Source: Ylistrum balloti (Eukaryota). From it: 64,000 bases of DNA. Both the position numbers and the translations under genes were made by a program. The stretch is from assembly GCF_031769215.1 (NCBI RefSeq), contig NW_026781921.1, positions 1,426,001 through 1,490,000 on the forward strand, written 5' to 3'. The notes beneath the pieces were generated by a model. It had not been told where the DNA came from, did no database searches, and worked only from the letters and a program-made list of their open reading frames with translations. Below, in pieces: positions 4,734-20,636 of the stretch; position 1 is the stretch's first letter; each line of letters starts with the position of its first letter.

Positions 4734-6745
4734 CAGTCCTCACATAAATACGAACTACATGACCGTGTGCAATGACTTCAAATGTATGCTGTATAAAGTG
4801 ATGGATTGTGCTGGGATTCCACCAATCAATTCTAGGTTTACATGTGAACTAGTACAACTAATCAGATCATGGCTCTGACATGGGTTCATAGATTCCACAT
4901 ATCACGTGCTGGTTTTATGAGTGCCAGCAGATTTCAACCAATCACACAGATGATATAAGGGCTTTCTCCTATGAGTAAAACTTTAATCATCATGGAAGCT
5001 GAATTGTAAAAATCATTTTCAATTCAGAAAGTTTTAAAATGAAAAGAAATATTAAAATACCACACTTAATGTTGATTCATTAAAATATTGTTAGTTTAGT
5101 TTCTATTCTGATATAAATACTTTCACAAACATGTTAAGTCCTCGTTAAACATTAGCTTGATAAAACAAATTTGGCAGTTCTTGTCTACATATATAGGAGA
5201 TATTTAGTCATTATCACTTTTGTTTGTTATATTTAGAAATTTATTTGCATATTTTTGGTTGCAATACATCTATGAGTATTTTCACTATTCATTGAGGTAA
5301 ACTTCTTGTGTATGTGTATGATTTTCAAAAAGCTTATTGAATTCATTTTAAAATGCAACTTGATCATGGTTTTATCCAATTAATATTATATAATATGGCA
5401 GTGATGAATAGTGCAACACTATACACAGTAATAAATTAACTTAGCAATTCTTTCACGACAGCAGGAAATTATTCACAATGTACAACAAACATATCATTTC
5501 AAACCATTAAAATTGTTTGTCAATACTCTCATACATTTCAAATCTCACTCACTGGAAGCTATGATTAAGTCATTCCTTTCAAAGAAAAAAAAAATAATAA
5601 ACAGCTAAGAAGTTGTTTTGGCTAGATTTTTCAAAAACATCACAAATTTTCGACGACTTAGATACTCACAAGTAAACGATAAATAAAACAATTTCTCTAA
5701 AGAAATCAATGAAAAATGCCTTTCAAAAGCAAATTTGACCCAGCCTGAAAATTGGTGAACATCACAGCACACAGCATTTGTAAGTAGGAGATAAGACAGA
5801 CGTGGGACAATCCCAGCATGATTTGCATCCGAGAATGATTGCCCAGGCAACCATAGCGACTAGTCATATTTATAGTTACAGTAGCATGCAGATATTATCT
5901 CATTATTGCTTGGCTACAACTTCACCAAAATCGAACACCACAAAGATGGCCTTTGTAACAAACTTTGCTGAACACTACTTGAACTTCACAGTTAACAGTT
6001 ACAATTTAGTTGGTTTACAGCATCGACACACACATCTACATGGTTAACATTCCATCTCTTTTTGCCTCGCCACTACACACTCTAATAATCAACATGGCTG
6101 CCAGCTAATGCAATTACTCATAGCCACAAAATGCATCACCTGTTTGCATGTACATCCCTTCAATACAAGTAAATACCGGTCATATATATTGCACATGTTT
6201 TATAACATCACCCTACTCACACCTCTCACACTTCTGAGGTTTCACACATCTGTGGGTTGTTAGCATGGACTGACCGGTAATCTTTATTAAAACTGCAGAC
6301 CTGGACCAGCACTATCGAGACCAGGAATTATAGTCCTGACCTCAGCTATACCTTGCACACCCTTACAAGTCTTCATTACTTACAGGCAGTCTTTACTTTC
6401 CCTGATGTTGAACTTCTGACTATTGCTCATTACTGAGAGCAAATTCAGGTAAAGAACACAACCAATCTTTCTGTTACATGCTGTTGCGTGTTCTCTTATA
6501 ACACAATGCTCGCAATAAATTATTGCATTCAGGGAGCGAGTACATTTTCAGTTGAAGCACGCATCCAGCTTACCATCAACATGAATCATAACCGCAGGTT
6601 CTGTATGGTTACAGTTAGTGCATTGAGTCAACTGTGACTGTCAGACCAGCACTGCTTCATTAACCGTGGACAAGGAATTATGCACGGTAGGTCTGGTAAC
6701 GGTAAGGGATTGACTTGGTCAGAAAAACTCTTGTCACAGTAGGAT

Positions 6746-6946
6746 TCATCTGCTGAGGCTGTGAGAGCGCTCCCGGTCGCCATCGTTAGTTGTCTCTTCT
6801 TCCGCTTTAACTTGATATTTGGCAAAGACACGATGCATCATGGCCTGCTTGAGGGTTAGTCGTTCAGCTGGGTCATACTCAAGCATCTGATTGATGAGAT
6901 CAAACAAGTCGCGATGATCAGGGTTTTCTGGGTCTCTAAGATACCG
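6746..6946 (-). CDS. CLK2: Alternative terminal exon S (canonical end): RYLRDPENPDHRDLFDLINQMLEYDPAERLTLKQAMMHRVF...DRERSHSLSR*, 66 aa
   Basis: Acceptor tttgttctttgcag|CGG, phase 0. Encodes subdomain XI (MLEYDP..R.T). The RERSHSLSR terminus resembles my recollection of the Drosophila Doa C-terminus. Confidence 0.93.
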   Translation of the reverse strand, partial: RYLRDPENPDHRDLFDLINQMLEYDPAERLTLKQAMMHRVFAKYQVKAEEETTNDGDRERSHSLSR

Positions 6947-7540
6947 CTGCAAAGAACAAAGGCCTCACATTAGTTATCCATGTAGGAAAATGAACAAAAC
7001 AAAGATATTACAGTAAACTGGAAAAAATCAAAACTTCTTTCTAACCAGGGATTATTGATATAGAATAAATTGGTATATCCTATTCTTAGTGTTTTCCTTA
7101 AACAGGTCCTAAACAAATACAACTAGAATCAATATGTGTATCATCATACTGTATAACATGAAATAATCAGAAGTATTTTTACTTCTTTATTTTGTGAGTT
7201 TTTTTTCTTTTAGGATACAATATTTCCAATGACATATTTTTTTATCTTGAATCTTTTTTTTTTCTTTTCCATTTTAAAAGTATGTATGCAGCCTATAAAA
7301 ATGAATGTTTCTACACAACAATCATTGCATGTTATACAGTTTTAATTACACTTAATAAATTCTACCTGAAATAAAACCAGTGTAAAGTTATTGTGACAGA
7401 TCAGGTTAGTATGGCTAAATATGGTTGTTCTATAATACAATCACTGTAAAGCAACATTCTTTTTTTATGTGCAATTTATTTTCCTGAACTTCGTGATGGA
7501 AACAAATGCGTAAAATTTCATTTTAAATGAAGATAGACAT

Positions 7541-7796
7541 AACAAGGGCTGTCTAAGACACAGATTAAGATCCCCGAAAGGGACAAAATTTAAGTATAAA
7601 AAATAACAAAGGGCTATAACTCCTAAATTTGCAAACATGAGAGATGGTTCTTGTGCACTGCACTTGTTGTTGAGATCTATCTACTTCTGAAGTTTTATGT
7701 TGATACCACTTATAATTTTTGTTATGCTCCGGACAAAATTATGACTGACAGATGGACAAAGTAACAACTACATGCTCTCCCTACAGGGGGCATAAT
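7541..7796. mobile_element. Non-autonomous bivalve dispersed element (Helentron/HINE or CvA-like)
   Basis: Starts acaagggctgtc...atccccg. Ends with gac-type microsatellite (gacagatggac), then catgctctccc...gggggcataat short hairpin. Confidence 0.5.
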
Positions 7797-8089
7797 GACA
7801 GATAATAACATAGCTTTACTTCATAAAAGATAATCACAACAGTGAAAATCGCTGAAGTTCATAACTGTGAATGTTGGTTTACAATAAGCATGTTGTTTTG
7901 TACCTGTTTGTGTGATGTAATACATTCTATACTGAAAGCATTCTTTGTTCTCTAAACAACGAAATATTCCACCATATCAATTCGTTGTGTTCTCATTTTA
8001 AAAAACAGCCTTGCTTCTGTACTTACCATATCATTTACATCCACGAATCATTAAAGATAATTATAGGTAACAGTTAGCATCAATCAACA

Positions 8090-8395
8090 GATGTCTAGTC
8101 AAGACACCACCTACAGGTGTATTGTGGTGTACCATAGTCAGGTTAATACAAATCTTGGTTTTATTAACTATAAGTTACGATCAGTATCATTCAACAGAAC
8201 GCTAGTCAAGACACCACTTACAGGTGAATTGTGGTGTACCATAATCAGGTTGATACAAACCTTGGGTTTTGAGTAACAACAAGTTCCAATCAGTATCATT
8301 TAACAGAACTCTGATCAAGACACCACCTCCAGGTTGATGCAAACCTTGGGTTTTGAGTAACACTAAATAACAATCAGCATCATTCAATAGAACTC
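8090..8395. repeat. Degenerate ~108-bp tandem repeat, ~3 copies
   Basis: tcaagacacc at 8099, 8206, 8315. Confidence 0.85.
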
Positions 8396-9499
8396 ATGCC
8401 TACAGAGACATATGTCGTAATTTTTCATTAATGTGTACCAGTATTAACCATTTTTGTGCGACTAACAAATCCAGTGCTCCCGTTATCTCTACGTACTTCA
8501 CACATTTCTCATGTCATTCTAAAGTAAAAGCTACTTCATACAAATTCCTTATACATGCAAAAACCTAGTATTTGGTACTTCCAATAATTTTCCAATCATC
8601 ACTATTAGATTTTCCCTGTTCATATTCAAGATGTATTATTTCCCTGGTGGGATACAAATATGATATCAGACTTGACCATCTCAAGAGCAAGATGAGGTAA
8701 ATTCAATCCAAGAGCAAATACTCTCAAAGATTTCCAAAAATCATACAAAGAAACTCATTCAAAATCAGTCACACCAGACACTTTTTTAAGATTTATTTTT
8801 TTAAAAGAACATCTCATCAGGAATCAATATGAATCCAATTATTTCAAATGAAAATAGTTTTCTCTTCAGTTATAAAATCGATATAATCACATAAAGGTTT
8901 CAGGTATAAATCTACACTAAAGAAAGCTGTTCAGCATTTATCACCAGATTCAAGACTCATCCGCCATTTGTGACAGTTATATCTTTAATTTGATAAACTT
9001 CAATAACACTGGATATCTTGCATAAAGTTGTGAATCCTTTATTTCGATGACACGTTGGAGTTATTGATAGATTAGTAGGTAAGTATACATGTATGTATTT
9101 AATACAATCTTTCTAATTATAGATCTGTTTTCTAACATACCAACAAGTCACTGACAACCAAGTCCATGCCATTCAAAACCTTCTGACAACACACAACACT
9201 TCAAGTCATTCGCAAAAGATCAAGCCATTTTAGACAACCAAAACCGACCATACCTGACAGGATGGTGACACATGCATTAAACACCAACTTAATATGCCTA
9301 TGGCAACGAAAACCTTCCTTTTGCAATGCCATGCTGTACTGCTTCATTAACAGTTTTGCTTCTCTCCACAGTTGACATTCGTCTACCTATCTAAATATTT
9401 TCCCTTAGTTCTTCTGTCTACATATATTTCACTGTCACCTTTCCTTGTACCTATGATTTACCGTCCATGTTAACAATGCTAGAGTCATGCTTAGTTTTA

Positions 9500-9700
9500 C
9501 CCACCTCAGTTCCCTTACACATCATACCCTTCCAAAATAAGTAACATCATTACGATTCACTTATAACACAATGATTTACCTATGACAGTAACACCTCAGT
9601 TCCCTTACATATCATACCCCTCCAAAGTAAGTAGCATCATTATGATTCGCTTATAAAACAATGACTTACTCATGAAAGTAACACCTCTGCTCCCTTGCCA
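9500..9700. repeat. ~90-bp tandem duplication, ~2.3 copies
   Basis: cacctcagttccctta repeated at ~90-bp spacing. Confidence 0.8.
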
Positions 9701-10008
9701 CATTCTTTTCCTATGCAACTATTATCTTTTCCATTCCTTTACAACACAATGTTTGACTTGTGCAGGTAATATCTTCTCCATTCATTACCAAACCATGCTT
9801 TACCTAAGTAATATTTCTGTTCATTACCACAACATGCTTTACTTAAGCAAGTAATATTTTCTCTGTTCTCTTACCACATCATGCTACATCTATGAAAAAA
9901 ACTTCTGTTTTTTTACCACACCATGCTCTATTTGATGAGGACATCTGTAATCATGCTCACTCCATAGCCAAGTAGAGTAAAATATCCACCTTCTATGATT
10001 GGTCACTG

Positions 10009-12555
10009 TCATACAGTCTCTATCCCACTAGATGGATTAGATTGCGGTCCTCCATCCGGTGCTTGTGTTGTGTAGACCGGATCACGTTCAACAGTGTTAT
10101 CACAACCAGAAGGCAAAATGACCGACACACAATTGTCAGCATCGTCTATAACCAAATGCTCGCCACCAGAATTAGTCCTTTGAATATTCTGAATGGAGTT
10201 GGAATCTGCTACTGAGGGAGAGCCAAGGTCAGACATCACAGGACTGTTTGGAGTTTTACCTGTGAATATATTGCTAACAGCGATACCAGAAGGCAGAGGA
10301 GAAGCATGAACCCGAGACGGCTCATGCAGCACCAGTTCGCCTTCCACAACACTGGGATCGGGATCTGGGTCAAGGCCCACTTCAGATAAAAAACACTGCT
10401 CTGATGTGGGTGCCTGTTTTTTACTCCGTTTCCTGTGTGCACGCTTAGCAGTTTTCTTCTGTGTTTTATTCTGAGCTTCCTCAACCTTGACCTGAGTGTC
10501 ACTGTCCAAGGGTGTGTCTGAGAGAACAGCTGTGTAGGCCACAATGGGAGGTTTCTGTATTGGGGATGGTTCAAGAACCATGGTTTGAGTTGGCAAAGTC
10601 ACCATATTCCTTGTATCAGTGGGATCATACACCAATGCTGCTGGCTGCTCTAGCACTACAGTAACAGTATCGGGTGTTGGATCAGTCACAGCAATCACTG
10701 GAGTAGGATTGGCCACTGCGATGACAGGCGGGGGAACTGTCACCGTCATCACAGGCCCTGCAGGATTCATCTCTACAATGGTCTTGGCGGTGTCTCTGAC
10801 TGCCTCCTGCTCACAGTCAGCACCTTGGGATAAAAAACCTTGCTGTGAATCTGTCTGGCTGGTATCTTGCTGTTCTACATCTCCTCCCACTTCTGTGTTA
10901 CATACAGTGCTTGTCTCGCCTTCTGTTTCATTGTTGCTGAGATTAGTTTCAAACGAAAAAGCATTAGCTCCTGATGAGGCAGTGTCAGGGGCCTCTGCAG
11001 AGGATGGAACCTCAATAATGGGGCTAATCGGCTGGTGCTGTGACATATTTAAGAAGACACTTGGGGTAAAAGTCTGGCTTAGCAACAGCTTGAGTGGATC
11101 TTCCTCAGGCTTCTTCTCCTTTTCTTTAGGAACTTTCTCTGGTTCTGACCAGGATCTTTCCGTCACTTCCACTTTGAGATCTTGTATTGGCCCTTTGACT
11201 GGTTCTTCTGGTTTCTGCTGGTGATTAAGCTCGGATTTTGACCTATCTACAGAGACAGGCTTAGCCAGTGCAAGCTTGAGCAGTTGATATGCTGACAGTG
11301 GTTTCTCTTCTCTTTTTGGGACGGGTTCCACTTCCAGTTCTTCCTCATGTCCAGACACATGCCCAGACTTTCTACGATCACCTCCTCCACGCTCTCTTCG
11401 CCGACGTTGGAGACGTTCAGCAACTGTTTCTTCAGGGTCGAATCCAGGTGACTCACCTCTCTCAGAGATGGAAGTTTTTCGACTAGTTGACTCATCAAAA
11501 CTGTCAAAGCTTGCAGGCTTTTCTATTTTGTGTGTACTAGATTCATCCTTATGTGAACTACTGTCTTCAGACCCAAACATCTGTCTCCAGGTTCGGATAG
11601 CTGATCCCTTGTCCATTCGTGATGGAGACACAACTTTGACCTGTAATCTGTCAGGTGACAGTTGCTGTTGTTCCGGAACCCTCTCTACAACCTCCTCTGC
11701 TGGCTGTTCTTCCTCCATGTTCTCCTCCATTCTTTGTCGCCATGATTTCCTTCGAGTAAAGGCATCGTAAGTCTTTGGTTCCTCAGCAGCTGGTGAAGCC
11801 TCTTTTTCTTTTTTAGGTAATGTCAATTCAAGATGCTCTGGTTCAGCAACCTCTAGCTCTTTCTTCTGTCTCCATGCTTTAATGCTGAGCACCTCTGGCT
11901 CCGCGGCCTTGGTATCCACCACCGTTGTAGTCTGCTCTGTTGGTGGATTAGAGGCATAGTCATCCTTGGGTTTCTCTGTTTCACTGGCCATTTCCATCTC
12001 AAGTTTGAGACGCCATGACCTTGGCTTGTTAGGATCCTTAGGAGGAGACATTTTTGCTTGTGCTTCTGCAGCCTTTCTTTTCCTTTCTTTGTATGTTACA
12101 TAGCCACTTGTTTTCTCTGGTAGTACCTTGTTTGGCGTTTTCTGTTTCTTTGGAACCACCTCTGGAACTTTCTCCTCTACTTTCATTGGAATATTTTGTG
12201 CCACCTCTTGACTAGAACTCAGCTCTGTATGGTTCTGTTCAACATGGCTCACCTCACCAGAATCTTCCCTAGATTTGGCAGCTGATCTTGACCGGCGTTC
12301 TGAGGATTCCCTTTGTGATCCATTGGTTGGGACAGTCAGTTCTGCCATCTTTCCTTCTTCTAATGAAGCTGATTTTTTCCTCTCGGCTGGGTTGTCTAGA
12401 GGAAGACGTTCTGCATAAAATTTCCGACATGGACCAAAGAACGGATGGTTCATTGCCTCTCGTAAAGTAATGCGTTCCTCTGGTATGTACTCGAGCATCA
12501 TCTCAGTCAACTCAATCAGTTGCCGATGTTCTGGCCCCTTGTCTCGAATGTAATG
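10009..12555 (-). CDS. CLK2: Alternative terminal exon L: HYIRDKGPEHRQLIELTEMMLEYIPEERITLREAMNHPFF followed by an ~800-aa E/K/P/S/T-rich disordered tail (848 aa total, ends GIETV*)
   Basis: Acceptor ttgttgtttttcag|CAT at 12556-12558, phase 0. The stop-free 2547-nt frame is GC-richer than its surroundings. Its first ~40 aa align with kinase subdomain XI. Confidence 0.85.
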   Translation of the reverse strand, partial: HYIRDKGPEHRQLIELTEMMLEYIPEERITLREAMNHPFFGPCRKFYAERLPLDNPAERKKSASLEEGKMAELTVPTNGSQRESSERRSRSAAKSREDSGEVSHVEQNHTELSSSQEVAQNIPMKVEEKVPEVVPKKQKTPNKVLPEKTSGYVTYKERKRKAAEAQAKMSPPKDPNKPRSWRLKLEMEMASETEKPKDDYASNPPTEQTTTVVDTKAAEPEVLSIKAWRQKKELEVAEPEHLELTLPKKEKEASPAAEEPKTYDAFTRRKSWRQRMEENMEEEQPAEEVVERVPEQQQLSPDRLQVKVVSPSRMDKGSAIRTWRQMFGSEDSSSHKDESSTHKIEKPASFDSFDESTSRKTSISERGESPGFDPEETVAERLQRRRRERGGGDRRKSGHVSGHEEELEVEPVPKREEKPLSAYQLLKLALAKPVSVDRSKSELNHQQKPEEPVKGPIQDLKVEVTERSWSEPEKVPKEKEKKPEEDPLKLLLSQTFTPSVFLNMSQHQPISPIIEVPSSAEAPDTASSGANAFSFETNLSNNETEGETSTVCNTEVGGDVEQQDTSQTDSQQGFLSQGADCEQEAVRDTAKTIVEMNPAGPVMTVTVPPPVIAVANPTPVIAVTDPTPDTVTVVLEQPAALVYDPTDTRNMVTLPTQTMVLEPSPIQKPPIVAYTAVLSDTPLDSDTQVKVEEAQNKTQKKTAKRAHRKRSKKQAPTSEQCFLSEVGLDPDPDPSVVEGELVLHEPSRVHASPLPSGIAVSNIFTGKTPNSPVMSDLGSPSVADSNSIQNIQRTNSGGEHLVIDDADNCVSVILPSGCDNTVERDPVYTTQAPDGGPQSNPSSGIETV

Positions 12556-12793
12556 CTGAAAAACAACAATACAATACACAATATACGACTGGAAGTAAAC
12601 GCTGGAATTTTTTTTTATATATAAAATTTTGAAGAATTTACATAAACCATTTTCATATTTCTCACAAGTATTTTGAAATATCTTTAACAATTGTGATAAT
12701 TTTCATATAAACAATAAACTTTCATTAACAATCACATAATATATTGTTGAAATTTATTTGAACTTATTTAAAACTCTTCATCATAGCAACTAT

Positions 12794-13262
12794 AATAAGA
12801 GACCCCAGAGGGATTTTGGCGTCCACTATCATATGGTCTAAACTGTTCCTTTATCAGTTGCATTTTTCCATTATATTTTCTCCTTTCCCATCCCTTGAAA
12901 AATGTATGCAAAGGCGGAGACCAAGAAGAACCTAAATATCAATTTTGATAATGATTAATCCAAATCATCTATAGATATAATTAGAAGGGGTTGAGGGTAG
13001 ATATGTCTGAGAAAGACACATCCAATACTTATAAAGAAATAGCAAAAACAAACTTGACTTTCAAAACTGAACATGGCAGCTTGTGGACCATTTTGTTTCT
13101 TCAATCAGTCATGAAACTGAAGATGAAGCTTCCTATGAGATTCAAGAAAGATCAATAAAAAAAAACAGGAACAACAAGAATTGTTAAAGGATGGATGGAC
13201 AACAGGTGGACAATGGACCACAAAGGCGATTTGAACAGCCAACCATCTGATGGCAAGCTAAA
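12794..13262. mobile_element. Degraded non-autonomous dispersed element
   Basis: aataagagaccccagaggg start; ggatggatggacaac microsatellite and gcta end, the same architecture as 7541-7796. Confidence 0.4.
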
Positions 13263-13649
13263 ATTTCTCTCTTTTTCTAAACAAAGGATGACATAATTTA
13301 TCAACTTCTAATCAACACAACATCAATTTCTTTTATTGATTTTCAAAAGAATAAACATGATTGATACAGTTACAATGTGTAAGATCATGATGTGTACTAC
13401 GCCCATAAGTTAATGACATAAGGAAACTGTAAAGAAACAAGATAATCTATTTAGTATATGTTCTTCAGATATTGAATCTAATTGGCAAAAAGTTCATCCA
13501 TTAAGAAATGCTATTTGCCAGTACTATAACAAGCTTCTATTGGTGTCACTACCACCTCTTTAATTACTGACACTTACTGATGTAAACACGCTCATTAATG
13601 ACCGTCATTAACTGGTGAAATTCCGCTAACTAACGACTATCATTAATTG

Positions 13650-15460
13650 TATAGACCCCCTAACTGCCTGTAATAACAGACTAAAGTAAGGATAGTGTTA
13701 TAACACTGATACAGTGATATACAGACCCCCTAACTACCTGTAATAACAGACTACAGTGAGGATAGTGTTATAACACTGATACAGTGACTAGGATATACAG
13801 ATCCCCTAACTACCTGTATATACAGTGACTAGGATATACAGACCCCCTAACTACCTGTATATACAGTGACTAGGATATACAGACCCCCTAACTACCTGTA
13901 TATACAGTGACTAGGATATACAGACCCCCTAACTACCTGTAATAACACACTACAGTGAGGATAGTGTTATAACACTGATACAGTGACTAGGATATACAGA
14001 CCCCCTAACTTCCTGTATATACAGTGACTAGGATATACAGACCCCCTAACTACCTGTAATAACACACTACAGTGAGGATAGTGTTATAACACTGATACAG
14101 TGATATACAGACCCCCTAACTACCTATAATAACAGACTACAGTGAGGATAGTGTTATAACACTGATACAGTGACTAGGATATACAGACCCCCTAACTACC
14201 TGTATATACAGTGACTAGGATATACAGACCCCCTAACTACCTGTAATAACACACTACAGTGAGGATAGTGTTATAACACTGATACAGTGACTAGGATATA
14301 CAGACCCCCTAACTACCTGTAATAACACACTACAGTGAGGATAGTGTTATAACACTGATATAGTGATATACAGACCCCCTAACTACCTGTAATAACACAC
14401 TACAGTGAGGATAGTGTTATAACACTGATACAGTGACTAGGATATACAGACCCCCTAACTACCGGTAATAACACACTACAGTGAGGATAGTGTTATAACA
14501 CTGATACAGTGACTAGGATATACAGACCCCCTAACTACCGGTAATAACACACTACAGTGAGGATAGTGTTATAACACTGATACAGTGACTAGGATATACA
14601 GACCCCCTAACTTCCTGTATATACAGTGACTAGGATATACAGACCCCCTAACTACCTGTAATAACACACTACAGTGAGGATAGTGTTATAACACTGATAT
14701 AGTGATATACAGACCCCCTAACTGTATATACAGTGACTAGGATATACAGACCCCCTAACTACCTGTAATAACACACTACAGTGAGGATAGTGTTATAACA
14801 CTGATATAGTGATATACAGACCCCCTAACTACCTGTATATACAGTGACTAGGATATACAGACCCCCTAACTACCTGTAATAACACACTACAGTGAGGATA
14901 GTGTTATAACACTGATACAGTGATATACAGACCCCTAACTACCGGTAATAACACACTACAGTGAGGATAGTGTTATAACACTGATACAGTGATATACAGA
15001 CCCCCTAACTACCTGTATATACAGTGACTAGGATATACAGACCCCCTAACTACCTGTAATAACACACTACAGTGAGGATAGTGTTATAACACTGATATAG
15101 TGATATACAGACCCCCTAACTACCTGTATATACAGTGACTAGGATATACAGACCCCCTAACTACCTGTAATAACACACTACAGTGAGGATAGTGTTATAA
15201 CACTGATAGGGTGACTAGGATATACAGACCCCCTAACTACCTGTAATAACACACTACAGTGAGGATAGTGTTATAACACTGATATAGTGATATACAGACC
15301 CCCTAACTACCTGTAATAACACACTACAGTGAGGATAGTGTTATAACACTGATACAGTGACTAGGATATACAGTGGCTAGGATATACAGACCCCCTAACT
15401 GCCTGTAATAACACACCACAGTGAGGATAGTGTGATAACACTGATACAGTGACTAGGATA
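13650..15460. repeat. Modular satellite with 41-, 70- and 76-bp unit variants
   Basis: Modules tatacagaccccctaactacctgta, ataacacactacagtgaggatagtgttataacactga and tacagtga(ctagga). Confidence 0.96.
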
Positions 15461-17536
15461 AATAAAGTAATTCAGATACTAACCATGGAAGTAAACACTT
15501 GGTTTACACATATTATTAGTGTTACTTCAAGATGATCAAAACACATGCCTTGTCTCCTTCTACAGAATCAAGAAAATAGCCTTCAATGATGCACATATAT
15601 CATTCCGGTCCAATGCAGAATTAGTAGGCATGCCAGCATAGCAAAATCGCCGAGGACACACCCGCACAAAAAAAAAATATCATACTTCATCCTGCTGTCC
15701 TCTTCCTGGCCAGTGTACGAACATGGTAGAACACCAAACTGTGGTACAGAGCTGCTTCAAGGTAAAGCTCAATGAAGATTGCACACAAAACTGGCCTTCA
15801 TAACAAACATTGGAGATGCTTTTATTTCAAAATTTCACACCTGTATCAAAATCAGTCTGGGATCTTGCAAAAGGGATAAAATCATGTTTTTTGATAAACT
15901 ATTCCAGTTTTCAAAAGCAGTGCAAAAATTTCTCAACTGAAGCACAACCTAGCTTTCACAAAATAAAGTTTCAAACCATTCATCAGACAATAAACCAACT
16001 ATATTGAACGGCACACAACATTCAAAAACGGGGAGAAATCTGCAGTGATAGTTTAATTGTTAGTAGGTATAAAAGACGATTTGTGCATTGAGCATAAACT
16101 GAGTTTTAATCAAAAGAAACTAGTTTACCCATCTGTCAATGCCCCCTTCAAAAGTCCATCTCTCCAAGCATACTCACTGCTGTTTCATTTCATTCATGTG
16201 TTCCGATCTCACAAAATATTAACATTTTTTTTCGACATTTATCATTAGGTCCTTTTTAACGTAAAAAAAATTCAGACTAAATCAATGGTTACAATGTGGA
16301 AACACATCATTACAAATATTGAAATAGGAATGAAGACATGAATAGGGTTGATTGTGATGGAAATACAGCACGCACCCTAATCGTTCACGAAAGTCTGATT
16401 TATATACATCAATTAACAGTCAATTAGTGTTTTCAATTCAAATCAACGACACCAAAGGAACCATTGATTTCTTTTTCCTTCTTTTGTGAAAAACTCTTTT
16501 TTTCCTGAAGTTTCATTCATATCAAAAGTCTTCAATCAGTCTTTGATCTTTATGTAATGCATTGGATTTCCATGTCTTTGACTCCTAATTTCTTGACTTT
16601 GTCAGTAAAAGTGAATTATAAGTAATTAATCATCATTTTCCATAGTAGTAGCAATCATACAAATCCGTCTCCAGACATTCCATCATTTTTTCCATGACCT
16701 GGTCAAAATTCAACACCAATATTAATAAGGACAACAGGTCCTGAAGACGTGAATCCCTAATCAGAGAACAAAGAATGCTTTCAAATATCACAGGTTTTTT
16801 ACAGTTACATAAAACCATAAATAATTTCAACATAAGTGAAATACATTTATATGGTTACTTTGGCATGATAACATAGGTATGTAATTATGTGTGTGTAAAT
16901 ATACAAAACTCATGCATATGCCAAAATGTGTCTGTCACAAAAGCTACAATTAATAAAAAATATCCTCCACATTTAAACTCAAATATATTTCAGAATACAC
17001 CGATTGAAAACTAAAAACACCAATAAAAGTTTAGTGTAAATATATACTGCAGGGATATGTACTGACTACATTGAAAATTAAAACATGAATACAAAGATAC
17101 ATATTTTGTCATCATAATTAACCCCAAGGTATATACTGTTTAGTATTCATCTGCTACTTCTTTGTAGAGAGCGTGGAAAGGTGGGGAAGGTAGGATTTTT
17201 TGTATTTGTATTTTGTATTTTTGATGAAAGAATATGCAATTTCTGCGATGGTAAATTTGATCACTTACTAGAATTACATGGTATCTATGTCAAAGAGATT
17301 ATCTCTAATATCCATCTTCCACAAGTTGTATTTGACATAGGTAAAAAAAAAAAACCTTTGTCTATCAACGCTGTAGATATTTCTGCTAGGTTTGATTTTA
17401 ATGAGAGCAGACCTTTGTTTCTGCAGCCCATTATAAACACTTATCACCAAAATATTCCATCTTAAATATGCAAATGTTTGCATAAAAACGATGGTAAAAT
17501 CTTGATGATTTGCCTCGGGAATGGTGGATTCCTTAC

Positions 17537-17627
17537 CTCCAAGGGCTTGCAGCTTTCTCTCACGTACCGCCCTGATGAACTTTTCGAATCCCAGTCTAAC
17601 CGCCCCTTGTAGAAATACTTGGACTTC
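17537..17627 (-). CDS. CLK2: Mutually exclusive exon B: (K)[30 protein letters not shown], 91 nt
   Basis: ttacccctcttaag|G ... GAG|gtaagg. Phase 2 in, phase 0 out. Confidence 0.9.
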
Positions 17628-18526
17628 CTTAAGAGGGGTAACAAAAATAGAGCTTGGTGAGAGACAATACACACTCACATGCTCCTATCCACATAATCCA
17701 AGGCTACTCAATATCATCAAATTACCTCCCTTTGTGGCTCAAACCCTTCACTCTAGTTGCCTTCATCAAATAATTTTTCTTCTCTTCCTTAATTTTAGTG
17801 AATCTATAAATCCATCCATAAAAATGTTTGTTTAATTTGCAGTATTGCTGACTATAAGGAGGGCGAGTAGGTACTTTGATGTTAGTGCTAACCCTGGATC
17901 TGTGGGCACTCTAACAATATGCTCGGCTATACAAACATGCAAGCCTTACTGCTGACAAGTTCCATCGTCTTTTGTTTAATTCAGTAAAGAGATTCTCAAA
18001 TTTGGAAAGCATTGAAAAATTTCCAAATTTAAAAAACTACAATTACTTTGAGATTAATTTGAAACAAGTGTTATCACTCTGGAATTTGTCAACAGAACAT
18101 CATCACAGTTTTAACATCATGCCTATTGCAAGCAAAATAAAGCATTCCAAGATCCCATTTTGACATCCTTGGATTACAGACAAGGAAATGTCTAACCGCT
18201 GAGCTAAAATTACTTTTTTTTTTCTCTCTTTGACATACATAATTCAAAGTCTGTATCGTCAAGTTTTTCTCTTTTCAAATTTGATATATGGTCAAAAATG
18301 ACAATGCTACAAATGAAGCTCAATGACTTTCCTGTCACCCTTGTACAAATACCAAAAGTGGATCTTTGAAAAATAAAATCATTCTCTACCTAATGAACTG
18401 AACAAAGACTGTTGAGAACAGTACACAATGCGCAGGCATGAACAGACAATGGCAGGCTGAGAGATGACGAGTGAGTATTCAACATCAGGCGGATGGGCGG
18501 CAGGGCAGGTGTCGGACGATACTTAC

Positions 18527-18614
18527 ATACAGCGGCCGACAGTTTTCTCTCACATAACGCCCTGCGGACGACGTATGGTCCCACTCTAGGCGGCCGTGCC
18601 AGAAATTATTTGTT
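18527..18614 (-). CDS. CLK2: Mutually exclusive exon A: (K)TNNFWHGRLEWDHTSSAGRYVRENCRPLY, 88 nt (absent from the ORF track in this frame)
   Basis: Pyrimidine tract ctctctctcctccctatcaaag|A and donor TAT|gtaagt. Phase 2 in, phase 0 out. Clear paralog of exon B. Confidence 0.88.
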
Positions 18615-20556: not shown

Positions 20557-20636
20557 TTTGTCTTTTTCACCATTCGGTAGGGCAGTGATCCCAGAATCCG
20601 CTCCATCATTGCTAGATGCTCTTTGTTATCATGAGT
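20557..20636 (-). CDS. CLK2: CLK exon [26 protein letters not shown](K), LAMMER signature, 80 nt
   Basis: ctgcag|ACT ... AA|gtaagt; [11 protein letters not shown]. Confidence 0.98.

Follow-up and report, generated by a model that had tools for sequence, protein, structure and literature searches.

Two adjacent exon choices and conserved GCAUG elements at the 3′ end of a scallop CLK kinase gene

The 3′ end of the CLK gene

The window, a stretch of 64,000 nucleotides from the scallop Ylistrum balloti, contains a CLK/LAMMER kinase gene on its minus strand, and the module considered here is the 3′ end of that gene. The open reading frame of its long terminal exon (L) is 100% identical to XP_060084793.1 of this species, and all database matches to the product of that frame carry protein kinase domains (PF00069/PF07714). 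The LAMMER motif was found in every CLK protein model checked in the scallop set. Residues 330-534 of the B-S isoform match the human CLK2 structure 6fyk with 302 bits (E 1e-89), and exons B and S are both aligned. With a kinase domain, the motif and a C-lobe similar to solved CLK structures, the gene can be classed on its sequence as a CLK/LAMMER dual-specificity kinase. By setting the phosphorylation state of SR proteins, CLK kinases control splicing throughout the genome. In molluscs, in brachiopods and in several further invertebrate phyla there is only one CLK gene (PMC12795684). The exons and poly(A) signals of the module are as follows.

20557..20636, minus strand: constitutive upstream exon with the LAMMER motif; its 3′ end holds 2 nt of a Lys codon that is completed by the first base of A or B
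18527..18614, minus strand: exon A, next-to-last exon of a derived 'FWHG...PLY' type, 88 nt; acceptor ending in aaag, donor beginning with gtaagtat
17537..17627, minus strand: exon B, next-to-last exon of the canonical CLK type, 91 nt; aligns to human CLK2 structures
10009..12555, minus strand: terminal exon L; first base at 12555, preceded by the acceptor ...tttttcag, stop codon at 10011-10009
8984..9103, minus strand: first poly(A) hexamers after L (ATTAAA 9103, AATAAA 9043, ATTAAA 8989)
6746..6946, minus strand: terminal exon S, encoding the short C-terminus canonical for CLK, with the end ...RERSHSLSR; stop codon at 6748-6746, AATAAA at 6288

The transcript order is A, B, L, S, with 899 nt between A and B and an A-to-S intron of 11,580 nt (18526..6947); these values, and all the other coordinates and lengths given in an earlier sequence-only reading of this DNA, proved exact. 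All introns of the module are GT-AG. Because the lengths of A and B are both 1 mod 3 and both exons end in phase 0, all four joins (A-L, A-S, B-L and B-S) are in frame, as that reading had also stated. Joins were read by script for frame, and database searches were made with single exons, single reading frames or database proteins. When B is read in frame after A it contains no stop, and the frame runs on to a stop after 44 nt of L or 11 nt of S, at precisely the terminal codons that had been quoted. A and B share 58-68% amino-acid identity and L and S share 51-56%; the members of each pair are true homologues. Exon A measures 88 nt in all nine species compared, and in these nine the two exons are likewise adjacent, homologous, of like length and of equal phase. 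A and B (88 and 91 nt, adjacent, homologous and in the same phase) thus have the sequence features of tandem-duplicated exons. L re-encodes the last kinase helices and continues into a tail of about 790 aa; a Pfam search with the L tails of scallop and oyster matched no family. The poly(A) hexamers of L lie 0.9-1.0 kb beyond its stop, at a distance similar to that in other scallops. L carries a separate stop and separate poly(A) signals upstream of S, and the two form a pair of alternative last exons with putative cleavage sites. Both L-type and S-type ends are present among annotated proteins.

Exon joins, age and selection

The joins were read from annotated isoforms and therefore record presence, not frequency. 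In scallops the A-L join is found in seven models from four species and the B-S join in Mizuhopecten OWF49171.1; no A-S or B-L model exists among the annotated scallop proteins. The complete set of four joins is annotated for each of Octopus, Ruditapes philippinarum (X1-X5), Mya arenaria (X1-X5) and Magallana. The annotation of Haliotis rufescens shows A-L, B-S and A-S, and Haliotis asinina, H. cracherodii and Dreissena have A-L and B-S only. Every annotated full-length isoform across the species examined carries A or B. Lineus has in addition one annotated A+B isoform with an early stop, so A-to-B splicing does occur in that animal. Both last-exon acceptors are open to the donor of A as well as to that of B, and the module is combinatorial, not a locked A-S/B-L cassette. 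The coupled, nested pairing of A with S and of B with L that had been read from the exon order is contradicted by these joins, both by the A-L and B-S models of scallops and by the four other genera with the full set. Each pairing is a single splice junction, so long reads are unnecessary for telling the pairings apart.

The order A-B-L-S is shared by four scallops, Mya, Haliotis and Octopus, that is by bivalves, a gastropod and a cephalopod. In the brachiopod Lingula and the nemertean Lineus, exons A (88 nt) and B (91 nt) are both present and each is joined to S in isoforms (A-S and B-S), and a tblastn search of their CLK loci found no L-like exon. The A/B pair predates the split of molluscs, brachiopods and nemerteans, and L is a later molluscan addition, placed between B and S. 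Since Lingula and Lineus have A/B without L, the A/B pair is the older and there was no two-exon cassette; the apparent nesting amounts to two successive tandem duplications. It is B and S, not A and S, that resemble the canonical CLK form of other phyla. The proposal that B and L are a duplicated copy of the last two exons does not survive these comparisons, in which B and S look ancestral and two outgroup phyla have A/B without L.

Among four scallop genera, pN/pS is 0.06 for A, 0.07 for B, 0.06 for S and 0.02 for the kinase part of L; purifying selection thus acts on each of the four exons, a pattern well beyond chance. The protein encoded by exon B is 100% identical in three of these genera, where all changes are synonymous, and the 53 nt of intron directly upstream of B are kept in four of four scallops. 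These data bear on whether B and S might be decaying relics or annotation artefacts in scallops, the real gene ending in A-L. RefSeq does give A-L only for Ylistrum, Pecten and Argopecten, and the C-terminal half of the B-S protein retrieved no scallop transcript fragments: its C-terminal 200 aa, searched for scallop S transcripts, had a best match of 73% identity and no scallop fragment among the matches, and the whole B-S protein returned no further scallop S isoform. However, relics would hardly be expected to show this constraint on B and S, intact splice sites and a conserved intron block before B in all four genera, and we regard this explanation as scarcely credible. Selection, together with the one Mizuhopecten model, suggests that B and S are used in scallops.

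Separation of A and B, and the GCAUG elements

What keeps A and B apart was considered from several sides. Across nine species the A-B intron spans 464-1467 nt, and going upstream from each acceptor the first AG is met after only 25-73 nt, which places the branch points proximally. With an intron of 899 nt in Ylistrum and proximal branch points, steric exclusion was rejected, and the earlier statement that A and B are too far apart for it holds in all nine species. Incompatibility between U2 and U12 splice sites was also rejected, since the donors in the nine species are all gtaag or gtgag and the acceptors all ag, that is, of the U2 type. Under the exon-junction rule, nonsense-mediated decay (NMD) acts on a stop that precedes the last junction by more than 50-55 nt. 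In scallops the A+B frame stops in the last exon, after 44 nt of L or 11-29 nt of S, and skipping both exons also puts the stop in the last exon, beyond the reach of this rule. Elsewhere the A+B stop falls inside B, at 64 nt (Mya), 58 nt (Haliotis) or 49 nt (Octopus, Lingula and Lineus) before the last junction. To judge from these positions, exclusivity in scallops would not be policed by NMD through the exon-junction rule. The claim that NMD cannot police double inclusion was sound to that extent but overstated, in that a frame-shifted B free of stops is peculiar to scallops and that NMD independent of exon junctions had been left out. In scallops, A+B transcripts do read through to a last-exon stop, as that reading had stated; an A+B isoform is annotated in Lineus.

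Intronic RNA pairing of the docking/selector type had been suggested as a further check. In the four-scallop alignment, counting only perfect stems in alignable columns, we found 48 conserved complementary stems of at least 8 bp, compared with 45 in a parallel-orientation control, and hence no excess. An apparent signal against column shuffling (48 versus 1.4) was dropped because that null ignores local composition. A long-range pairing between the conserved blocks at 18125-18116 and 15633-15625 was rejected as well, since this 8-bp match is built on the palindrome GCATGC. Among the means of enforcement that had been listed, RNA structure thus loses ground for want of a stem excess, and splicing factors gain from the conserved GCAUG elements. 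These elements, written as RNA, are the following.

18118..18122, minus strand: GCAUG in the A-B intron, kept in 4/4 scallops (block 18153-18078)
17936..17940, minus strand: UGCAUG in the A-B intron, kept in 4/4 scallops (block 17955-17918)
17678..17682, minus strand: GCAUG at -55 of the exon B acceptor, adjoining the likely branch site on its 5′ side; a counterpart exists in all six independent lineages
16915, minus strand: conserved GCAUG in the B-L intron
15544..15633, minus strand: strongly conserved block of the B-L intron, in which the GCAUG copies at 15633 and 15548 are both conserved
9165..9956, minus strand: nine sense-strand GCAUG copies arrayed in the L 3′UTR (about 1.3 expected)

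Between the upstream exon and L, six of six sense GCAUG copies are kept in four scallops, a fate shared by 2.8% of intronic 5-mer positions, and GCATG is the top-ranked conserved 5-mer in the four-scallop intron comparison. The A-B introns of six independent lineages together contain 19 copies where 4.8 are expected. A GCAUG is located between -44 and -97 of the B acceptor in all six of these lineages, which represent three phyla. Within -110..-35 of that acceptor, a window picked after the positions had been seen, GCAUG is the only one of the 1024 5-mers present in six of six lineages; the same window before A contains it in one of six. Across phyla the pentamer alone is kept before B and its flanks cannot be aligned. 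Inside 6746-18614 there are 21 sense and 6 antisense copies, compared with 31 and 39 in the remainder of the window, so that sense GCAUG is not in excess over the window as a whole. The first 1 kb of the L 3′UTR contains 8-10 copies in each of the four scallops (1.0-1.5 expected), versus 2 copies in Mya, Haliotis and Octopus (about 1 expected), and by this comparison the array appears to be specific to scallops. (U)GCAUG is a well-established, metazoan-wide RBFOX site that acts by a position rule (PMC2777236). With conserved (U)GCAUG in its flanking intron, the A/B pair has the sequence hallmark of a candidate RBFOX target.

Proposed control, rival readings and known systems

Taken with the observed anatomy, age, annotated joins, purifying selection and motif conservation, we consider it rather probable that the module makes two adjacent and independent choices, A or B and then L or S, in a combinatorial manner under RBFOX-type control; the reader of GCAUG, whether it represses or favors an exon, and any bias toward particular joins are the inferred parts. 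The first choice would be a mutually exclusive tandem pair, A derived and B canonical, that swaps the segment following the LAMMER helix (labelled a MAPK-like insert in the sequence-only reading). The second would set L, which brings its own stop, its own poly(A) signals and a long domain-free tail, against S, the canonical short end. An RBFOX-type protein bound to GCAUG would most likely set exon choice: the copy 44-97 nt upstream of B, beside the branch site, may repress B, and the sites downstream of A may favor A. The array in the scallop L 3′UTR is a candidate means by which the same factor could act on L. A factor shared by both choices could make A-L and B-S the commonest forms without any coupling in cis.

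In a rival reading, a crossed soft coupling, scallops, abalone and zebra mussel would make mainly A-L and B-S, one RBFOX-type trans-factor acting on both choices. This is possible, though we hold it the less probable outcome. It agrees with the annotation of A-L and B-S only in scallops, Haliotis asinina, H. cracherodii and Dreissena, and with GCAUG flanking A and B and filling the L 3′UTR in four scallops, but that array is restricted to scallops, A-S also occurs in Haliotis rufescens, and four genera have all four joins. Obligatory A-S and B-L pairing, enforced by RNA loops or poly(A) competition around a duplicated B+L cassette within an ancestral A-S intron, is very improbable. The geometry does permit it, an A-to-S splice looping out B and L; A-S and B-L isoforms exist, among others, in Ruditapes and Mya; and the 8-bp intronic match could have been its pairing. 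Against it stand the scallop models, which lack precisely these joins and have A-L and B-S, the four joins in four other mollusc genera, the resemblance of B and S to the CLK of other phyla, the A/B pair without L in Lingula and Lineus, the absence of a stem excess and the palindromic nature of the match.

It is also conceivable, but unlikely, that GCAUG serves another RNA-binding protein or short local structures and that splice-site competition by itself sets the choice between A and B. In favor of this reading, both exons have weak aag acceptors and the donor of A is near-perfect and conserved in all species. However, the pentamer is kept across phyla amid unalignable flanks, and the motif is strand-specific and fits the metazoan-wide RBFOX site and its position rule (PMC2777236). 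Returning to the RBFOX-type reading, we put forward with considerable reserve its most far-reaching form, a switch that has existed for over 500 million years and in which GCAUG at the B branch site swaps the post-LAMMER segment of the sole CLK of molluscs, brachiopods and nemerteans, and the scallop 3′UTR array co-selects L, yielding A-L and B-S forms. If this is true, one tissue-specific splicing regulator re-tools a master splicing kinase into these two forms. More generally, a C-lobe exon swap kept in three phyla, together with a mollusc-specific choice of short or long tail, suggests that one gene supplies CLK forms of distinct function, and the cross-phylum GCAUG before B provides a concrete candidate regulator. 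A literature search found no description of a CLK A/B exon swap combined with an L/S end choice. The coupling account is also corrected, since the joins that it forbade are already annotated and its cassette origin is contradicted by the outgroups.

Several known systems offer comparisons. Mammalian CLK1 and CLK4 regulate the skipping of their own exon 4, near the 5′ end of the kinase, which can give a truncated, inactive kinase. In scallops, A+B inclusion or double skipping would similarly delete the last kinase helices, but the module itself swaps C-lobe segments and tails and leaves the kinase intact. Exons 2 and 3 of alpha-tropomyosin exemplify a pair policed by NMD or kept exclusive sterically. 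As there, the lengths of A and B are not multiples of three and double inclusion or skipping shifts the frame, whereas the scallop module has proximal branch sites, an intron of 464-1467 nt across species, and a stop in the last exon. Docking-site/selector RNA pairing, as in Dscam and 14-3-3zeta, operates on tandem-duplicated alternative exons beyond the distance of steric exclusion. A and B are such duplicates at such a distance, but they lack an excess of complementary segments and comprise only two variants.

Two further systems involve Fox proteins. Exon 4 of calcitonin/CGRP, controlled by Fox-1/Fox-2, has a separate poly(A) site and competes with downstream exons; UGCAUG lies beside and inside this terminal exon (PMC2777236). 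Scallop L likewise precedes the terminal exon with which it would compete and carries separate poly(A) signals, although its GCAUG copies are at least 2.6 kb from the L acceptor, in the 3′UTR, and in scallops only. In the C. elegans FGFR gene egl-15, ASD-1/FOX-1 act on exons 5B/5A through (U)GCAUG in the upstream flank, near the branch site, so that one exon is repressed and the other used (PMC2777236). The scallop gene differs in that it encodes a splicing kinase, the candidate for repression is the downstream exon (B), the pair directly precedes alternative last exons, and the factor is putative. The two systems nevertheless share a tandem pair of exons, in scallops putatively mutually exclusive, with GCAUG upstream of one exon, near its branch site.

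The CLK gene and its alternative 3' exons

A protein search with the minus-strand 893-aa open frame at 10009-12690 matched XP_060084793.1 of Ylistrum balloti at 100% identity and, at 71-76% identity, proteins from Pecten maximus, Mizuhopecten yessoensis and Argopecten irradians, which all possess kinase domains. The LAMMER motif is present in these scallop homologues, and an end-to-end alignment of the short (B-S) isoform with crystal structures of human CLK2 scores 302 bits. Judged by these similarities, the gene is the CLK/LAMMER kinase of the scallop. The mitochondrial ribosomal protein L53 gene is its upstream neighbour in scallops, abalone, Lingula and Lineus (fetched loci L002, L003, L005, L007 and L008), and this conserved microsynteny supports the orthology of the CLK loci. 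The exons considered below are as follows.

20636..20557, minus strand, upstream exon, whose final two bases are part of a Lys codon
18614..18527, minus strand, next-to-last exon A, 88 nt
17627..17537, minus strand, next-to-last exon B, 91 nt
start 12555, stop 10009, minus strand, terminal exon L
start 6946, stop 6746, minus strand, terminal exon S

A is homologous to B, and L to S. Since the upstream exon ends with two bases of the Lys codon and A and B each finish in phase 0, every donor-acceptor pair is in frame. In the frame set by A, exon B is stop-free and termination follows after 44 nt of L or 11 nt of S. The coordinates and frames stated in the sequence-only reading were all correct on re-check, including the statement that an A+B transcript has no stop inside B and ends only in the last exon.

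RefSeq gives the long L isoforms (P0002, P0003, P0174) misleading labels ('STE20-like', 'Nek5-like', 'axoneme-associated protein mst101(2)-like', 'uncharacterized'); these proteins are long-tailed CLK kinases. Their tail measures ~790-820 aa in scallops and oysters and only ~40-50 aa in clams and octopus, and a non-scallop 934-aa L-type exon product (P0005, from a 5.5 kb ENA contig) is 31% identical to the scallop tail. In the Argopecten irradians locus (L001, 71755-72788) the 3' portion of the kinase exon recurs ~13 times in tandem, and the annotated protein P0004 is aberrant exactly where this repeat sits.

Exon pairing, selection and the age of the layout

It had been proposed that the exons are coupled in a nested fashion, A with S and B with L. 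In scallops the annotations show the reverse: the A-L join is present in seven annotated proteins from four species, the sole model with the S end (Mizuhopecten OWF49171.1) carries B, and neither A-S nor B-L appears among the annotated models of these four species. A wider comparison was assembled from the isoform clusters of other molluscs, in which annotations show presence.

Annotated joins of next-to-last to last exons in other molluscs
Ruditapes philippinarum: all four (X1 B-L, X2 A-L, X3 B-S, X4 A-S)
Mya arenaria: all four (X1 A-L, X2 B-L, X3 A-S, X4 B-S)
Octopus (sinensis, vulgaris, bimaculoides): all four
Magallana: all four
Haliotis rufescens: A-L, B-S, A-S
Haliotis asinina, H. cracherodii, Dreissena: A-L, B-S

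Qualitatively, then, all four combinations occur in four of these genera, an outcome that the sequence-only reading had itself named as speaking against its model, and nested coupling finds no support. Going by the annotations, any bias would favour A-L and B-S and so run contrary to the nested scheme. Because A or B adjoins L or S in the mRNA, each pairing is a single splice junction and there is no long-range phase problem.

The orthologous loci fetched from Argopecten, Pecten, Mizuhopecten, Mya, Haliotis and Octopus all share the exon order A, B, L, S. In Lingula (a brachiopod) and Lineus (a nemertean), A (88 nt) lies 5' of B (91 nt) and A-S and B-S isoforms are annotated, and a tblastn search of these two CLK loci with five mollusc L-type segments returned S matches only. 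B and S are similar to vertebrate, insect and amphioxus CLK; the derived types are A ('FWHG...PLY') and L ('HYLRDKG'). The occurrence of A and B but not L in Lingula and Lineus, with B and S canonical, implies that the A/B duplication predates L. These sequence comparisons argue against the idea that a B+L cassette was inserted in the A-S intron, and the layout would most simply reflect two successive tandem duplications, each placing the new copy beside its parent.

All four exons are under strong purifying selection in scallops, with pN/pS among four genera of 0.06 (A), 0.07 (B), 0.02 (L) and 0.06 (S). The low values for B and S indicate functional exons, although RefSeq omits both in three scallop species. 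Synonymous divergence among the four scallops is 0.24 for A and 0.29 for B, about half of the 0.54 found for the kinase part of L, which in this small sample hints at RNA-level constraint within the alternative exons. Exon B is strongly diverged in Dreissena, Mya and Ruditapes (P0020, P0026, P0028) and is 85 nt long in Mya. Exon A is near-invariant across phyla, so that the better conserved copy is the derived one, not B.

Candidate mechanisms of exclusion

A and B are 899 nt apart, and the earlier argument that this spacing is too great for steric exclusion holds: the A-B introns of the species compared are 464-1467 nt long and the AG-free zones before the acceptors just 25-73 nt, which rules this mechanism out. 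U12 incompatibility is likewise ruled out, every splice site being GT-AG and of U2 type. RNA structure had also been suggested as the enforcer of exclusivity. In an alignment of the four scallops that spans the region between the upstream exon and L, we compared all column pairs for stems of at least 8 bp with pairing possible in every species; for the control, segments were paired in parallel, so that local composition was preserved. For perfect stems in alignable columns there were 48 conserved stems against 45 in the control, and hence no docking/selector signal.

The claim that NMD cannot police double inclusion stands for scallops under the exon-junction rule, and there the skipping of both A and B falls equally outside this rule. 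As a general statement it is too strong. Outside scallops the shifted frame stops inside B, 64 nt (Mya), 58 nt (Haliotis) or 49 nt (Octopus, Lingula, Lineus) before the last junction; moreover, NMD in invertebrates need not depend on exon junctions, and an A+B+L transcript would carry a 3'UTR of >3 kb. Double inclusion is annotated in Lineus, where isoform X3 (XP_064653148.1) contains A followed by frame-shifted B.

GCAUG motifs and a putative RBFOX-type factor

The motif GCATG (GCAUG in RNA) is conserved around these exons. Of the 5-mer positions in the aligned scallop introns, 2.8% are invariant across the four species, yet each of the 6 sense-strand GCATG copies that lie between the upstream exon and L is conserved, making this the top-ranked 5-mer. 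The motif is strand-specific in this region: within 6746-18614 there are 21 sense and 6 antisense copies. No enrichment is seen window-wide (97 on both strands versus 86±10), and the rest of the window holds 31 sense versus 39 antisense. Summed over six independent lineages, the A-B intron contains 19 GCATG versus 4.8 expected, with enrichment in each species examined. In an unbiased scan of all 1024 pentamers, GCATG alone was present 35-110 nt 5' of the B acceptor in 6/6 lineages, an interval chosen after the positions had been seen.

GCATG positions relative to the B acceptor
Scallop: -55
Mya: -47
Haliotis: -44
Octopus: -90, -97
Lingula: -44
Lineus: -67

The corresponding interval before A contains the motif in 1/6 lineages, and in 4/6 a copy lies at most 100 nt downstream of the donor of A. 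The sequences flanking the motifs cannot be aligned between phyla.

In scallops a second cluster is found in the L 3'UTR, the first kilobase of which contains 8-10 GCATG in each of the four species (1.0-1.5 expected; 0-2 antisense). This array is a degenerate repeat of ~40 nt whose constant part is the motif alone, and it is absent in Mya, Haliotis and Octopus. The first poly(A) hexamers lie 0.83-1.06 kb after the L stop in the four scallops, and a 90-nt tandem repeat (9502-9696, 2.2 copies) sits between array and hexamers. The B-L intron holds an exon-like element (15526-15559, minus strand) conserved in the four scallops, with a branch-site-like CTACTAAT at ~15627, a pyrimidine tract, tag| and |gtaaca boundaries and a GCAUG inside. 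Lengths of 34, 35, 32 and 33 nt in the four species show that the element does not encode protein, and one possibility is a decoy or poison exon.

Throughout the metazoans (U)GCAUG is bound by Fox-1/RBFOX proteins, which repress an exon from upstream sites, partly by blocking the branch site, and enhance it from downstream sites (PMC2777236). By analogy with this rule, we infer that an RBFOX-type factor most likely represses B and favours A. In scallops the same putative factor may also act on L, which could yield mostly A-L and B-S without any coupling in cis.

According to a recent CLK phylogeny, molluscs and brachiopods have a single CLK gene, and the MAPK-like insertion is a hotspot of variation; the A/B exon pair is not described there (PMC12795684). 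Isoforms of the module are already in RefSeq under poor names. The position rule itself has precedents in exons 5B and 5A of worm egl-15 and in the terminal exon of calcitonin (PMC2777236), and each component of the scallop module belongs to a known class: a tandem-duplicated exon pair of the mutually exclusive type, alternative last exons like those of calcitonin, and putative regulation of the GCAUG type.
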